Shown piece after piece: positions 35,891 through 40,596 of a DNA stretch of 64,000 nt; within the stretch, counting starts at the first letter, position 1; every line of letters begins with the position of its first letter. Source of the stretch: Saccostrea cucullata (taxonomy: Eukaryota); assembly GCF_032062105.1 (NCBI RefSeq), contig NW_026936290.1:124001-188000 (forward strand). Reading direction: 5' to 3'. The notes under the pieces were generated by a model. The model was not told where the DNA came from and ran no database searches. It worked only from the letters and a program-made list of their open reading frames with translations. The translations under genes were made by a program, and so were the position numbers.

Positions 35891-38800
35891 TCAGTCAATC
35901 TCCAGATCTGTGTCACTGTCCAAACAAGTGTCCTGAAATAGAGTCAAAACAAAAATAATGAACGCAAAAAAAAAAACCAAAGTAGGGCTTAATTAGAATT
36001 CACTCATTCTTAAAAAAACAATTAAAACAAATTTAATGTGTTTTGTACTGTATTTGATTTAAACAGGAATAAAAAATAAATCAGGCCTAGAGACCATGCA
36101 TAGACTGAGAACAGACTTAAGTCAAAATTTGATATTGAATACTCCGGTAGCTTGTAATTTATAACACAAATGTTATGTAAAATAATCCAGTTTGTGTAAT
36201 ATTCCAATTAAAACATGATTTTAGGTAAAAATTTTGTTTTGGTGTTAAAATTAATTCAAAACTTAATTTGATTGAAATTTTGACATAAGCCTTATCTCCA
36301 TGTATGCCATGGTCTTGGGGCCTGATCTCACAAGGGCTTATCATAATCTATATGCACATATGCCAACTTTCTAACATGATATGTTGGGACATGGCCCCTC
36401 ATTCATGTCAAATGTCTGGTCATATCCTGTGAAGATATTTTATAAGCTTCAATAGGGGGGTTGAAGGATCATTGTTGAGGGGTGATGATGTGATTTTGGG
36501 AGTGTGGCCTATGTATATGGGTCCAGTTTTGGCATTATGCTTTTCATTTTTCTTGATTTTAACCACCCCTACATTATACTAAACATAAATATGGTCACAA
36601 ATATGAAGCCTGTATATAGGTTTTCTGATAAGCATCTGTGAGTAATGCTAGGAAAATGCCCCTTCCCCTGATTAGCCTTACCCATCCACCCTGATCCACG
36701 ATCCAGGAGGCGAACTTATCCGCCACAAACTCCGCCGCTAAGTCCTTCACCTGCAGCGCCACCGCCCCTCCGGCCCCCGCCAGGGTAATGGCTTTCTTTG
36801 TGAGGTAGAACACAGCTGCTATCTGATCCCAGCTGTTTCCGGGCCCCACCGTGTTATTTACCGTCTCCTGGAAAGTCTGGTAGGTGGCGTGCTTAGCGAT
36901 CTCCAGCGCGGCGTCCTTCACAGAGTCAGGGGACACATTCAGCTACAGAATAATGTCATCAACTGGTATGTATAAATACAGGTATGACTACTGACATATG
37001 GTGCGTATATAGAAAAGAGTCTTATATGTATATTTTGTGTGTATAGTTATTCACATTAAGAACCAGTTTATAAGAAATAAACCAAATGACAGGCATTAGC
37101 ACACTGAAGTATTCATTATTTGGATAATTGTAAAAACTCACAGCAAAACTATCCCCAAATTCCCGAAGCCTGTCTCTTAACTGTCTCTCCAGCTCCGTCA
37201 ATCCTTCACCTGTAAATAGCATGTACTTAAAGATGACACATTTTATACTTTATATGAATTATTACATTTATATATAACTTTCATTCTAATAATTATAAGT
37301 AATATTGCATAGCCAAAAAATCATGGCAATACAAGCTCCTTCCAATTATATTTTGGATTAAAAAAAAAGTTACTTCAATAGACAAAACGGTTTACAGTCA
37401 ACTCGTACACAAACCGACTCATACACAAACCGAGTCGTACACAAAAAGTCAACTCGTACACAAATCAGAAGTCAACTCGTGCACAACATTTTATTTACAA
37501 CTGTTATGAATTACTTTTATATGAATGGAGTATAATCAAGAAAAATACAATAAGGACAAAGAGATGTGTTAATTTATTATTTTTTTATAAATATTTTAGA
37601 GGTTTAATTAAACAATAAAATGCTTTCTTTGTTTGTTATTACTGGAATTAACGGAAGAAGCTGTTGCAGAAAAAATACATAGCCCGAGTAAGTGGGTTAT
37701 GTAAATTTTTTCTGCAACAGCTGCGACCGTTAATTCCAGTAATAACAAAAAAAGAAAGACATTTCATTGTTTATATTTATATCTGTTTAAATAATCATTT
37801 AAAGTAGGATTAAAAAGATTAATTATTGTATTAATGATGCGAACGTCTTTATACGTTTCATTGATGGAACAGCCACTGATCAAGAAATCTGTACAGGCGA
37901 CATGCCGACTGTAGTTCATGCAGTGATTAATGCAATGGGTTTTCTTAAAATATAAAGGAGAAAATATTCAGCGGATGTAAATATCATTTAATTAACCTGG
38001 CTTCTCTTGTTAAGAATTCAAACAATTATTGTTAAACCAACACAAGCGCGGCGGTTTTGTGTACTGTACGAGTTGACTTCTCAATTTTTCTACACTAAGG
38101 AAAAGAATTCCTTAAATCACACAGGAAAACCTATGTAGGAATGACAAAAGTCTTGTGTACGAGTTGACTTCTGCTTTGTGAACGAGTTGACTTCTGCTTT
38201 GTGTACGAGTTGACTTTTTGTATACGACCTGGTTTGTGTACGACTCGGTTTGTGTATGAGTTGACTGGACACCGACAAAACACATACAGTGTAAATTATT
38301 TCTTAATCAGCTGAATAACAAAATGTACCCACCATCTCTCTCATCGACCCCCGTTAAGTTTGGCGTCCTGGCACTGACGCGTCTGCCGAGAGTGTGTTCT
38401 ACAGAACTACTGCCGCTTTCCGATAGTGGACTGGTGGCCATATACTGGTCTCCTATATGAGCTAACTTTTCAGCCACGGCGGAGTACAAGCGGTCCTTCT
38501 CTGGGTCTGATGGCTGGGACACTGCATGTCTGGGACACATTCCTAAAATAGAAACTGAACTTAAGAGATACATGGAGAATAGAGAGGGTTGCCTTATGTA
38601 ATTCAGTTAAACTCGGTTATAATGAAGTCACTGGGACCTGTGAAATTGCTTCGCTATATCCTTATTCGTAATATCCGTATAAGAATTCATTAAATTTATG
38701 TAGCTGGGGATTCAAGATAACTTCGCTATATCTCTGAATTCACAATATCTGTGTGCGTACTAAACAAGTTTTACTGTATCTGTTAGTTGCCGATACTAAA

Positions 38801-40596
38801 TTTGGAAAATACGATTGGATGTGGAACAATTAAATTTCTAGTGTTGCACTGAAAACTAACCTTGATCTTCATTTCCATCTACTTCAACATCATGACCTTC
38901 ATCAAAGTTCTTGACCTTGAACCTCTGTTTGACTGTTGTGTCCACAGTCCCGTCTGGACGTACCAATACCTGCTGCCTCTCACACGTATCAAAGTCCAGG
39001 ACAAAGGACTTGTTCCTACTGGTGCGATCTCTCACCTCACCCTGAATCGGCCCCTCTGGTATCAACTCGTCAGTTTGTCCGTACGTCTGCTCTCCGGTGA
39101 TGACGGTGGTGGTGGTGGTATGGTGGGTGTGATCTCGGCCTTCCTGCACTCTCTCTTGATAACCTTGACCTGTGGACACTGACCGGTTGTAGGCTGCTTT
39201 TGGAGATTTATGACGTTTATGGTCAAAGTCAAGCTCATCTGATTTGGATACTGCAATAAAAAAATTTCATGTAGTTGAATGATCCTTTTAGCCTCAAAAC
39301 AATAACAAATTATAAATAAGATATGGCCAAATTTATTCACTCTACTGCTTTTAGCTTTTTATCCTATTCCTTCTACAACATCTACCTACCTTTGATAGCG
39401 GAGGAAGATTTGTCTTTCTTGGATTTCCTGAAGGATGTGATTTTTTTCAGTTTTCGGAGGATCCCGCTGTCACTGTCTGATAATTCCGTGCTCTCCTTGA
39501 CGCTGGCATGCTTCTCTTTATGCCTGTGTTCTGACTCTCCTGTCACGTCAGTCGTTTCCCAGACATCCTTCTCCACCAGCATTCCCGACTTCGTCCCGTT
39601 GGTATAATGGTGTTGTTCAATATGTCCATGTTTGTGAGTGTGAACATTCTGTATTACTCGGCTATTCTTATCGACACTGGTGCCTTCGTCCTTCCTTTTT
39701 CTCTGCTTTCGTCGTTTTTTGATGGAGGCGTCTGATTGAGATCTCTGTCGTGTAACTCCCTCGATTTCTTTCGCTCTTCCTCGACTCAAACTCCTATTCA
39801 TACGTTCCCTCAATCGAGTAAAAATCGATTTCTTCTTGCGTCCAGGGGAGATAATCTCTTCTTCGTCTGTGTCTTCAGAGGACTCTGTCCCTGACTTTAA
39901 TCTCTGGCGTCCCCTGGTTATACCCACCTCTTCTATGTCCTTAAGTCCGCTGGGTCTTTCTGAGATTACATCTACCAGCTTATCTTGTCTCTCCCTTTCC
40001 TCTGTAACCTCAATCAATGCAGATTTAGAATCAGCAATGATTTCTCTTAGTCTTGATGGACTGAGAGATTTTGATAGGTCAGAGGAAGGTTCGCCTTTAT
40101 TTGTGACTTTTGACAGGACACTTGATGGGAGACTATTAGACCGCACTGTGTGGTCTTTTGGGGGTGGCTCTTCATCATCTACTCCATCTATGAATGGAAA
40201 ATCTACAGTTCCATCTGTGAGAGACCGGATAGACCCTCCAGGAATGGACTGGCCCGCCTCGCTGCGACATTTAGCACAGCTTGTCCGTGATGAATACCTG
40301 GACCCCTCCTTAGACGTGCTTCCACTGACTGGTCCATCAGTTTCTATGACATCTTCCACAACCACTTTTTGATAAGATGTCGGTATTGCAGCATTCTCTT
40401 CATTATTGTTCAATAAGAGTTGTTTCTTGAGGAACTCTTCTAAAATCCTATGAACCCCAGACCTGATTTCCTCCTCTGTTGGGGGAGGGAGTGGGGATTT
40501 CTTGCGGGTTTTCCCTCTTGTTTCTTTCAGATGAGTTGACAGTACATCAGAGGCCTGTTTATGTGTCTTTAGTACAGGATTTCTTCCCTCAGCCAT
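35891..40596 (-). CDS. Bcl-G (BCL2L14)/BCL2L12/Bfk-like Bcl-2 family protein, about 725 aa, no TM anchor
   Basis: Exons 40596-39390, 39250-38861, 38542-38333, 37209-37142, 36942-36682, 35932-35891 (2178 nt, GT-AG, phases consistent). BH3-like KLAHIGD and RLREFGD, TYQTFQETV helix, degenerate BH1 NSWDQIAAVF, BH2 FASWIVDQGGW, ends DTDLEID*. Confidence 0.9.
37388..38274. mobile_element. MITE with subterminal tandem repeats and a 6-bp TSD
   Basis: TIR cggtttacagtcaactcg / gagttgactggacaccg; arrays of gtcaactcgtacacaaa; TSD ACAAAA at 37382-37387 and 38275-38280. Confidence 0.85.
37609..37984 (+). mobile_element. Hairpin-ended non-autonomous element, copy 3, nested in the MITE
   Basis: Palindrome 37609-37773 followed by tatttatatctg; far end cggatgtaaatat 37972-37984. 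Confidence 0.7.
38604..38779. mobile_element. Tc1/pogo-type MITE remnant
   Basis: cagttaaactcggttataatgaa ... gtactaaacaagttttactgta ends; internal cttcgctatatc repeats. Confidence 0.5.

Follow-up and report, generated by a model that had tools for sequence, protein, structure and literature searches.

Bcl-2 and Bcl-xL, which have an NWGR-type BH1 and a membrane anchor, possess a flexible α1-α2 regulatory loop of about 60 residues without a BH3; this loop bears caspase sites, and cleavage there removes BH4 and makes the protein pro-death. BID has a Bcl-2-like fold without BH1 and BH2; its BH3, of the LAQ(V/I)GD type, is a core helix preceded by a caspase site about 25-30 residues upstream, and its N-terminal helix stays on the core until cleavage. 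BFK (BCL2L15) carries BH3 and BH2 but no anchor in 163 residues with a 19-residue loop; its single BH3 is α2, its caspase-type site, DEVD41/S (slashes mark the candidate scissile bond), lies in the α1'-α2 loop, and Arg110 replaces the BH1 Trp (PMC8814693). The same study describes BFK as BID-like and caspase activated, in keeping with the statement, in a preliminary description of the locus treated here, that BID and BFK are activated by cleavage in the loop before BH3.

BCL-G (BCL2L14) and BNIP5 (C6orf222) have long N-terminal regions before BH3 and lack an anchor, and BCL-G combines BH3 and BH2 without a canonical BH1. The BH3s of both act selectively on BAK (bioRxiv 10.1101/2022.07.24.499430), and mouse Bcl-G is reported not to be proapoptotic (PMC3481120). 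A survey of the family dates BID to jawed vertebrates at the earliest (PMC8998228), which bears out the earlier remark that a BID orthologue is not established in molluscs, and according to oyster studies no BH3-only protein is known from Mollusca (PMC5550854).

Here we describe a gene next to BAK in the oyster Saccostrea cucullata, analyzed in a window of 64,000 nucleotides (contig NW_026936290.1, positions 124,001 to 188,000). Its sequence places it in an old Bcl-2 family branch that has no name yet. The gene, its motifs, and its neighbor are confirmed as observations, and the interpretation that the preliminary description built on them is partly supported.

A six-exon Bcl-2 family gene adjacent to BAK

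The gene runs on the minus strand from 40596 to 35891 and has six exons, all with GT-AG borders by sequence check, whose phases fit and whose lengths sum to 2178 nt, i.e., 725 codons plus a stop (Table 1). The product of a spliced transcript from a related species (P0122, 731 aa) is collinear with it: tblastn with P0122 recovered five collinear matches, exons 1 to 5, at 64-86% identity, and 12 of the 13 residues of exon 6 are identical. The corresponding transcript contig (L011, 3479 nt) has a single unbroken 731-codon frame collinear with all six exons.

Table 1. Features of the 725-aa gene and its neighbor (positions in the window; residues of the 725-aa protein)
Feature	Coordinates	Strand	Residues	Remarks
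Exon 1	39390..40596	-	1-402 + one base	ATG at 40596; ORF list, GT donor; 64% identical to P0122 residues 1-395
N-terminal amphipathic helix	40417..40479	-	40-60	predicted α1 of Bcl-2 fold
IETD/G	40333..40347	-	84-88	clade-restricted caspase-type motif
Acidic S/T cluster, then basic helix (RKKKS...)	39775..39894	-	235-274	model helix 261-288, pLDDT 75-83
His-rich segment	39490..39657	-	314-369	first three strands of predicted beta module; model strands 318-375, pLDDT about 90
Exon 2	38861..39250	-	403-533	AG and GT borders; 68% identical to P0122 residues 409-539
Beta module, last two strands (predicted)	38895..39014	-	482-521	model strands 491-523, pLDDT about 92
VEVD/G	38874..38888	-	524-528	family-wide caspase-type motif in predicted flexible linker
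Exon 3	38333..38542	-	533-603	AG and GT borders; 77% identical to P0122
Canonical BH3 helix (BH3-1)	38439..38489	-	551-567	LAHIGDQY; best conserved block outside core, occupancy 0.97
DERD + Gly codon split at exon 3/4 junction	38334..38345	-	599-602	possible third Asp-Gly site just before α2
Exon 4	37142..37209	-	603-625	second BH3-like helix LREFGDSF (structural α2); borders checked
Exon 5	36682..36942	-	626-712	α3-α8, BH1-like and BH2; Pfam Bcl-2 match, alignment to Bcl-xL
BH1-like NSWDQ	36837-36823	-		exon 5; Trp kept
BH2 WIVDQGGW	36705-36682	-		exon 5
Exon 6	35891..35932	-		acidic tail of 13 residues with -LEID at its end, followed by the stop codon; no membrane anchor
BAK gene	28900..31780	-		exons near 31744-31480, 31234-31106, 30722-30534; membrane-anchor exon further downstream

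Exon 5 alone matches the Pfam Bcl-2 model (PF00452) with an E value of 5.6e-7 and 30.5 bits, just missing the curated cut-off of 31.4, and all 28 aligned relatives match it at E <= 0.1. Against solved structures, the family profile retrieved Bcl-xL as the best sequence relative (4.7e-14). On these matches we assign the protein to the Bcl-2 family, in agreement with its first description as a 725-aa Bcl-2-fold protein; that description also placed IETD/G, VEVD/G, both BH3 motifs, the BH1-like motif, and BH2 correctly. The two motifs of the form hydrophobic-x3-L-x2-hydrophobic-(G/A)-D-x-hydrophobic are BH3-1 in exon 3, with the family consensus KIAxKLxxIGD or IAD, and the exon 4 block, which the family profile aligns to the BH3 (α2) of Bcl-xL. 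Because the structural α2 is, by this alignment, the second BH3-like helix, the canonical BH3 appears to be an extra helix in the loop, unlike that of BID.

At BH1, the Trp is conserved in most family members, and the NWGR motif is absent from the oyster protein, with Asp-Gln in place of Gly-Arg and a family-wide reading of W-(D/N)-(Q/H). The Gly-Arg pair used for BH3 binding is accordingly not present in the BH1 of the 725-aa protein. BH2 has the W-x4-GGW form, with a gtaagg donor directly after the GGW codon. An intron at this point is a Bcl-2 family trait, and that of the neighboring BAK gene matches it in position and phase. Having BH3 and BH2 but neither a canonical BH1 nor an anchor, the protein shows a motif combination of the BFK/BCL-G type. 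The C-terminal membrane anchor, typical of but not universal in the Bcl-2 family, is replaced in the oyster protein by the acidic tail; across the family this tail is acidic and ends in -E-(L/I/V)-D, with [DE][LIVM][DE] at the C terminus of 27 of 41 members. The -LEID end has the acidic-aliphatic-Asp-COOH pattern of EEVD-type ligands of TPR clamp domains and may be such a ligand.

The family is unannotated and has members in molluscs, brachiopods, nemerteans, echinoderms, and a hemichordate, which share the N-terminal helix, an Asp-Gly motif before a canonical BH3, an anchor-less C-terminal Bcl-2 core, and the acidic tail. In public records they are entered as "uncharacterized" or misnamed after low-complexity proteins. 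The adjacent BAK gene, previously noted, is located on the same strand some 4 kb downstream; a BAK exon matches Pfam Bcl-2 at 2e-14, and human BAK is the best solved relative of its Crassostrea gigas counterpart (8e-33). The two genes are also adjacent in C. gigas, and in scallop there is no BAK gene within 10 kb of the family gene. In animals, genes that adjoin need not be partners, and the arrangement, initially read as a functional pair, is more probably what remains of a tandem duplication.

A predicted Bcl-2 fold divided by a giant loop

The preliminary description placed an α1/BH4-like helix at aa 40-60, far from the core. Of 39 full-length family representatives, 32 have its motif (ILEEFLKK), and a profile search with this helix matched no BH4 or α1 by sequence. 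Structure prediction, a check that the description itself had proposed, lends support to its placement. In an AlphaFold2 model of an orthologue (32 sequences in the model input; full-length pTM 0.39), residues 41-66 form a helix with a pLDDT of about 90, and the full-length model aligns with Bcl-2 family structures at Z 12-14 over 127-146 residues, starting from about model residue 40. For BOK, BFK, Bcl-xL, BAK, and BAX, the Z scores are 12.7-13.8 with 127-143 residues aligned, covering a predicted α1-α8 bundle around a central hairpin (BOK, Z 13.8, 143 of 150 residues; BFK, Z 13.2 over chain residues 6-162), and the alignments to BOK, BFK, Bcl-xL, and BAK begin at model residues 38-44, taking in their α1. 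The C-terminal part alone, without the N-terminal helix, reaches a Z of at most 9.5, and the rise to 12-14 with the helix present supports a split fold, in which aa 40-60 are predicted to be α1 and aa 604-712 to be α2-α8, with about 540 residues in between. We infer the contacts of the helix in this fold from the alignment ranges. As counterevidence, several structural alignments made without the N-terminal helix put BH3-1 at α1, and AlphaFold may be completing the Bcl-2 fold with whichever helix is at hand.

About 470 of the separating residues had been regarded as low complexity throughout; not all of them are, and they hold conserved modules and modules predicted to be ordered. The block at aa 235-274 is the second best conserved in the N-terminal half (occupancy, 0.90; similarity, 0.47), and the His-rich segment is kept even in exon 1 relatives of 30-33% identity. 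An NLS-like basic cluster is found among the N-terminal modules. The α1-α2 loop, in Bcl-2, Bcl-xL, BID, and BFK the place of regulation and caspase cutting, is predicted to have grown to about 540 residues and to comprise an acidic/basic helix module, a beta module, VEVD527/G528, and the canonical BH3.

Compared with known proteins, the oyster protein resembles human BFK (7ccl) in its BH3 and BH2, the lack of an anchor, and a caspase-type D-x-x-D site between α1 and the BH3-bearing core, and the core alone aligns with BFK at Z 9.3 with the lowest rmsd (2.4 Å). It differs in the length of its loop, in the extra canonical BH3 before α2, and in the BH1 Trp, which the oyster family keeps; further, the structural Z for BFK is tied with those for other Bcl-2 proteins. 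By protein-language-model features, chordate BCL2L14 (0.88) and BCL2L15 (0.85) are the nearest named clusters, scores that, being below 0.9, are leads only. BCL-G and BNIP5 share the long N-terminal region, and the oyster gene adjoins a gene for BAK, the protein on which their BH3s act; the literature cited for them does not describe a conserved caspase motif, a split fold, or a tail that ends in Asp. The position of the caspase-type motif relative to the BH3 recalls BID, but the oyster protein has BH2, the BH1 Trp, and a canonical BH3 outside the core, and mouse BID is a poor structural match to the orthologue model (Z 5.8). Pfam BID (PF06393) does not match the gene's own exons in the window; 7 of 28 relatives match it weakly, a sea cucumber protein alone reaching the cut-off (26.2 versus 25 bits), and in starfish and sea cucumber members the model weakly spans the motif-plus-BH3 stretch. 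Like Bcl-2 and Bcl-xL, the protein has a flexible α1-α2 loop. BID, BFK, and BCL-G may have their invertebrate counterpart in this family.

Caspase-type motifs before the canonical BH3

The two motifs that had been proposed to bracket the loop differ in their conservation. IETD/G is kept in most of P0001-P0008 (P0005 has IETE) and in P0122, relatives that are 62-67% identical, and is absent from P0009-P0011, scallop, and C. gigas LOC105336916, the aligned column elsewhere being E, T, or K. VEVD/G belongs to a family-wide D-x-x-D/G motif. BH3 Leu559 lies 32 residues after Asp527 (initially estimated as about 30 aa from motif to BH3), and cleavage at VEVD527/G would leave a C-terminal fragment of 198 aa, close to the 200 first suggested.

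An Asp-Gly occurs 22-65 residues before the BH3 Leu in 31 of 38 family representatives, compared with a mean of 15.8 (SD, 2.9; maximum, 24) in 2000 composition-preserving shuffles; it is missing from this interval in the other 7. The density of Asp-Gly motifs there is 3.15 per 100 aa versus 0.35 elsewhere upstream. For the C. gigas copy that adjoins BAK (LOC105336916), the RefSeq isoforms omit the exon 2 piece bearing the motif. The family profile has D/L/I/V at P4, E at P3, V at P2, and Gly at P1' in 51 of 65; L001 has VEVDG, L004 has IEVDG, and a paralogue in the same genome has IEIDG. Taken alone, the 725-aa protein has two [IVLD]ExD[GSA] motifs versus 0.25 expected (P(>=2) = 0.024), and with the looser pattern xExD[GSA], P(>=2) rises to 0.24. 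Among these sequence data, the strong evidence is that the second motif keeps its position across the family, not the motif count in one protein. The possible third site occurs as DERD[GS] or DVRDG in L001, L004, P0122, and scallop and is not family-wide.

VEVD/G has the features of a caspase substrate: Asp at P1, a small P1', Glu at P3, and a predicted accessible, disordered segment (orthologue model residues 527-547 have a pLDDT below 50). Taspase1 cleaves D/G with Gln at P3 and an aliphatic P2. The family motif does not conform to this consensus, P3 being mostly Glu or Asp and rarely Gln. Judged by its residues, the family motif resembles effector or caspase-6-type sites as much as caspase-8-type sites, and in many members the sites are of the DEVD type instead of the (I/L/V)ExD type. 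At least 52 exon matches to caspase domains are present in the genome.

Possible functions and their significance

The best explanation as a whole, to which we give about an even chance, is that the protein is a member of a split-fold Bcl-2 branch whose BH3 is freed by a caspase. A cut after Asp527 in the flexible linker would separate α1 and the N-terminal modules, including the NLS-like basic cluster, from the 198-residue fragment, which would begin 24 residues before the BH3. As has been proposed for BID and BFK, loss of α1 would loosen the core, and the freed BH3 would engage BAK-type effectors or pro-survival relatives, with an effect that could be either killing or restraining.

It is unlikely that the uncut protein is the active form, working constitutively as a BAK-selective BH3 ligand in the manner of human BCL-G and BNIP5 by priming BAK into pro-survival complexes. 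The Asp-Gly would then be another kind of short linear motif, one used for docking, one forming a turn that follows the final beta strand, or one cut by a different protease. A canonical BH3 in a loop need not be unmasked, Ruehl et al. report cell-protecting BAK-selective BH3s (bioRxiv 10.1101/2022.07.24.499430), and the nearest named clusters noted above are joined by the chordate PF15661 (C6orf222/BNIP5) cluster, which ranks first in features (0.88) as well as in shape (TM 0.54, 144 residues). However, feature scores below 0.9 are leads only, the P4-P1' preferences in a predicted disordered linker fit caspases, and the Gln that Taspase1 needs is rare. We consider it quite unlikely that the main role is nonapoptotic (trafficking, a signaling scaffold, or a nuclear function), with the N-terminal region doing the main work and the Bcl-2-like domain acting as a binding module. 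None of the conserved N-terminal modules is related to a known death motif, BH1 is degenerate, Bcl-G knockout mice are reported to be free of defects in apoptosis, and a link between BCL-G and chemokine secretion is reported; but the best conserved block outside the core is a canonical BH3 adjoined by a caspase-type motif.

The original proposal, that caspase-8 cuts at IETD87 and VEVD527, excising the loop, and that the C-terminal fragment directly activates the neighboring BAK in the manner of tBID, linking death receptors to mitochondria, also seems quite unlikely. Both motifs are in place, aliphatic-E-x-D sites suit initiator caspases, and BAK is adjacent here and in C. gigas; yet nothing points to caspase-8 specifically, IETD is restricted to close relatives, many members have DEVD-type sites, mouse BID is a far poorer structural match than BOK, BFK, and Bcl-xL, and the scallop gene has no BAK within 10 kb. 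That the protein is an artifact fusing an N-terminal disordered-protein gene to a short Bcl-2 gene is hardly credible: an old C. gigas model (P0121) did wrongly join the family gene to BAK, so fusions occur at this locus, but the uninterrupted transcript frame, the fitting exon phases, and the same architecture in more than 30 independent gene models from five phyla oppose it.

Extending the reading of a caspase-freed BH3, these proteins could represent an ancestral multimotif form of BID, BFK, BCL-G, and BNIP5. This bilaterian caspase-gated BH3 protein would have its Bcl-2 fold assembled across a giant regulatory loop, its BH3 freed at D-x-V-D/G, and an EEVD-like tail docking to TPR receptors (TOM70, chaperone cofactors) in place of an anchor; we regard this proposal as tentative and rather doubtful. 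In any case, a family from five invertebrate phyla places a textbook BH3 beside a conserved caspase-type site on a Bcl-2 fold. If the switch works, it would provide a BID/BFK-like amplifier in invertebrates, the vertebrate orphans BCL-G, BFK, and BNIP5 would gain an origin, and the insertion of about 540 residues would be shown to leave a Bcl-2 fold able to assemble. If the ancestral form is real, it would fill the reported gap in molluscs, namely, no BH3-only protein and no BID, and caspase-to-mitochondria feedback would predate the protostome-deuterostome split.

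Gene, transcript support and family

The gene for the 725-aa Bcl-2-family protein comprises six exons, delimited from open reading frames and splice borders, in which every intron is of the GT-AG type, phases are compatible, and the coding length is 2178 nt (725 codons plus TGA). Similarity searches with each exon separately revealed that all six are collinear, at 63 to 92% identity, with P0122, an orthologous 731-aa product read in a single unbroken frame from the 3479-nt contig L011. By this comparison, splicing of the window gene is backed at the transcript level in a related species, and an artefactual fusion of two genes is rejected by the same transcript evidence. 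The observation made in the preliminary description is confirmed: the N-terminal helix (aa 40 to 60), IETD↓G (aa 84 to 88), and VEVD↓G (aa 524 to 528) lie where it placed them, as does the first BH3 about 30 aa beyond the second motif, Leu559 being 32 residues after Asp527. Its interpretation of the protein as a caspase-triggered switch is partly supported.

Scoring of exon 5 against 1.84 billion representative proteins retrieved 97 matches at E ≤ 0.001. The full-length ones are 450 to 930 residues long, carry the Bcl-2 piece at their very C-terminal end, and share a series of conserved blocks (see table). Named members come from bivalves, gastropods, one cephalopod, one brachiopod, nemerteans, three echinoderm classes, and one hemichordate, and are all labeled in databases as “uncharacterized” or misnamed (e.g., “starmaker-like” and “mediator subunit-like”). 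The genome of Saccostrea cucullata itself has a second, divergent paralogue (motifs SDIEIDG, ADRLKFIGDK, GWDQ, and WVEDRGGW) on two other contigs (G000 C23110 and G000 C985), which appear to be either alleles or the result of a recent duplication; this second subfamily also takes in P0105 and P0110, two database clusters without a name, and the scallop protein P0026.

Features of the window gene, conserved blocks of its family, and other features of the window
Feature	Window coordinates	Strand	Remarks
Exon 1	40596-39390	-	
Exon 2	39250-38861	-	
Exon 3	38542-38333	-	
Exon 4	37209-37142	-	
Exon 5	36942-36682	-	
Exon 6	35932-35891	-	
Acidic S/T cluster (CK2-like), conserved basic helix RKKKS..., then NLS-like run KKRRKQRKRK	39691-39894	-	
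Predicted beta module	39490-39657, 38895-39014	-	five long strands; P0122 318-375 and 491-523, pLDDT ~90
DERD602↓G603	38334-38345	-	Gly codon split over exon 3/4 junction; 4 residues before alpha2
C-terminal tail	35894-35932	-	acidic, ...TDLEID-COOH
Block: N-terminal helix			ILEEFLKK-like core; 32/39 members
Block: acidic S/T cluster and basic RKKKS helix			
Block: D-x-x-D-G			
Block: canonical BH3			KIAxKLxxIGD or IAD
Block: S/A/G-rich linker			
Block: second BH3-like helix			LRxxGDR; profile alignment to BH3 (alpha2) of Bcl-xL
Block: BH1-like			W-(D/N)-(Q/H)
Block: BH2			
Block: acidic tail			ends acidic-aliphatic-Asp in 27/41 members (-SELD, -SEID, -SEVD, -DLD)
Single-exon 498-aa open frame	55420-56916	-	B-box zinc finger and NHL repeats (TRIM-NHL type)
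Retroelement-like fragments (by eye)	24175-25473, 17616-17930		minus-strand RT-like motif, 227-aa lysine/glutamate-rich frame, YIDDVL-containing frame
Raised local GC	24-26 kb		0.416

Cleavage-type motifs and the acidic tail

The two motifs of the window protein, taken by themselves, are only mildly unusual by chance (P = 0.024 for a strict pattern and 0.24 for a loose one). Across the family, we counted Asp-Gly in 38 representatives, one per 50%-identity cluster, and found it 22 to 65 residues ahead of the BH3 Leu in 31 of them, versus 15.8 ± 2.9 (maximum, 24) in 2000 composition-preserving shuffles. The dipeptide occurs 3.15 times per 100 residues in this interval versus 0.35 elsewhere upstream. 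The motif profile has D, L, I, or V at P4, E at P3, V at P2, D at P1, and Gly at P1' in 51 of 65 cases; it takes in sites of both the DEVD and the (I/L/V)E(V/I/T)D type, in many cases as a tandem pair. Conservation of the bracketing pair proposed earlier holds for VEVD↓G, which belongs to the family-wide D-x-x-D-G block, but not for IETD↓G, which is kept only in relatives with 62 to 67% identity; in scallop, the Crassostrea gigas gene LOC105336916, and more distant members, Asp is absent from the aligned position. An exon-1 word search, which matched only exon-1 reading frames on short contigs, is informative for IETD conservation but not for the full-length protein. A short motif, (I/V)PF(H/D)E(K/R)(T/S), recurs after Asp-Gly and ahead of the BH3 in members from gastropods, nemerteans, echinoderms, and the hemichordate; the window protein has a degenerate version of it (CPRHAVS...).

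The third Asp-Gly, DERD602↓G603, is shared, as DERD[GS] or DVRDG, among pteriomorph bivalves alone, and a cut there would part the canonical BH3 from the core. Among other uses of these motifs that we considered, N-myristoylation of the Gly newly exposed by cleavage was set aside, a permissive pattern being present (by eye) in only about half of the members. A Taspase1 site was rejected because that protease requires Gln at P3, where the profile has Glu.

The acidic, Asp-ending tail of the family resembles both the EEVD tail bound by TPR clamp domains and the C terminus left by a caspase; it might stand in for the absent membrane anchor.

A predicted split fold

The structure was predicted with AlphaFold for the natural orthologue P0122, using family alignments of 32 sequences. 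The C-terminal part alone gave a model with a mean pLDDT of 70 that matches Bcl-2 proteins at Z scores of 9.5 or less (Bcl-xL, 9.5; BFK, 9.3, with 2.4 Å over 101 residues); Foldseek recovered only weak Bcl-xL rows, and VIA-align was clearer. The full-length model places helices at residues 9 to 30 and 41 to 66 (pLDDT ~90), a basic helix at 261 to 288, a low-confidence linker at 527 to 547 containing IEVD533↓G, and a BH3 helix at 552 to 574, followed by a loop and the core at 614 to 723. Its Bcl-2-family matches rise to Z scores of 12 to 14, with alignments that begin at residues 38 to 44 and include α1 of the solved proteins (143 of 150 residues of BOK, BFK chain 6-162, and Bcl-xL chain 1-197); mouse BID reaches only 5.8. 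The remote α1 proposed earlier therefore has support from prediction, and the split fold is accordingly a predicted one, in a model with a pTM of 0.39 that was judged without coordinates. Alternatively, AlphaFold may complete the fold with any available helix, since some alignments of the truncated model place the BH3 helix at α1. By sequence, a profile of the N-terminal helix matched only designed helices among solved structures and no known α1/BH4. Ahead of this helix, most family members have a basophilic R-x-x-S/T site.

The loop between the predicted α1 and the core had been described as about 470 low-complexity residues. The model holds the basic helix and a beta module there, and the loop is therefore not uniformly of low complexity. 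One of the two distant segments of the beta module is His rich (HTHKHGH...), and the last strand of the module is directly followed by the caspase-type motif; comparison of the module with solved folds gave no convincing match (Z of 5.3 or less).

The BAK neighbor and relationships within the Bcl-2 family

The adjacency to BAK is borne out, the latter lying on the same strand about 4 kb downstream, and in each of the two genes the GGW codon of BH2 is immediately followed by an intron. It also holds in C. gigas, because an old (2012) model, P0121 (“Putative Bcl-2-like protein antagonist/killer 2” in UniRef), fuses the two genes by splicing from the GGW donor into BAK. This locus, LOC105336916, corresponds to P0121, P0014, and P0117; its current RefSeq isoforms contain a many-fold repeat of an acidic unit of ~40 residues, no longer have IETD, and omit the part of exon 2 that bears the cleavage-type motif. 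In Lingula anatina (L013 19140-25734), two near-identical Bcl-2 genes adjoin the brachiopod member; besides a BH3 (LALLGDQ) and a BH2-like motif (ILQNGGW), they have a membrane anchor and a long acidic extension, a layout reminiscent of Bcl-rambo. No Bcl-2 gene was found within 10 kb of the scallop member. The most likely reading of the adjacency is that it is left over from tandem duplication.

By sequence, the best solved relative of the family profile is Bcl-xL. In echinoderm members, the segment spanning the motif and the BH3 is weakly matched by the Pfam BID model (19.7 bits for starfish LETDG...LAQIGD and 26.2 for a sea cucumber protein, versus a cutoff of 25). Judged by protein-language-model features, the named clusters closest to the family are those of chordate BCL2L14 (0.88) and BCL2L15 (0.85), and a chordate C6orf222/BNIP5 (PF15661) cluster ranks first by features and shape (TM of 0.54 over 144 residues), all of which are leads rather than proof; Pfam PF15661 matched no family member even at an E of 10. 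A 36-residue query with the canonical BH3 found no BH3 peptides, and an Atlas search with residues 1 to 300 retrieved nothing.

BID makes its earliest appearance in jawed vertebrates (PMC8998228), and molluscs have no known BH3-only protein (PMC5550854). BFK has a DEVD41↓S site in its α1'-α2 loop, has a pseudo-BH4 in common with BID, and has been proposed to act like it (PMC8814693), and the BH3s of BCL-G and BNIP5 act selectively on BAK (bioRxiv 10.1101/2022.07.24.499430). Many caspase-domain exons are present in the S. cucullata genome. Caspase cleavage after Asp527 would release a 198-residue BH3-bearing fragment, which may in turn act on BAK; given the BCL-G/BNIP5 precedent, the direction of its effect could go either way.
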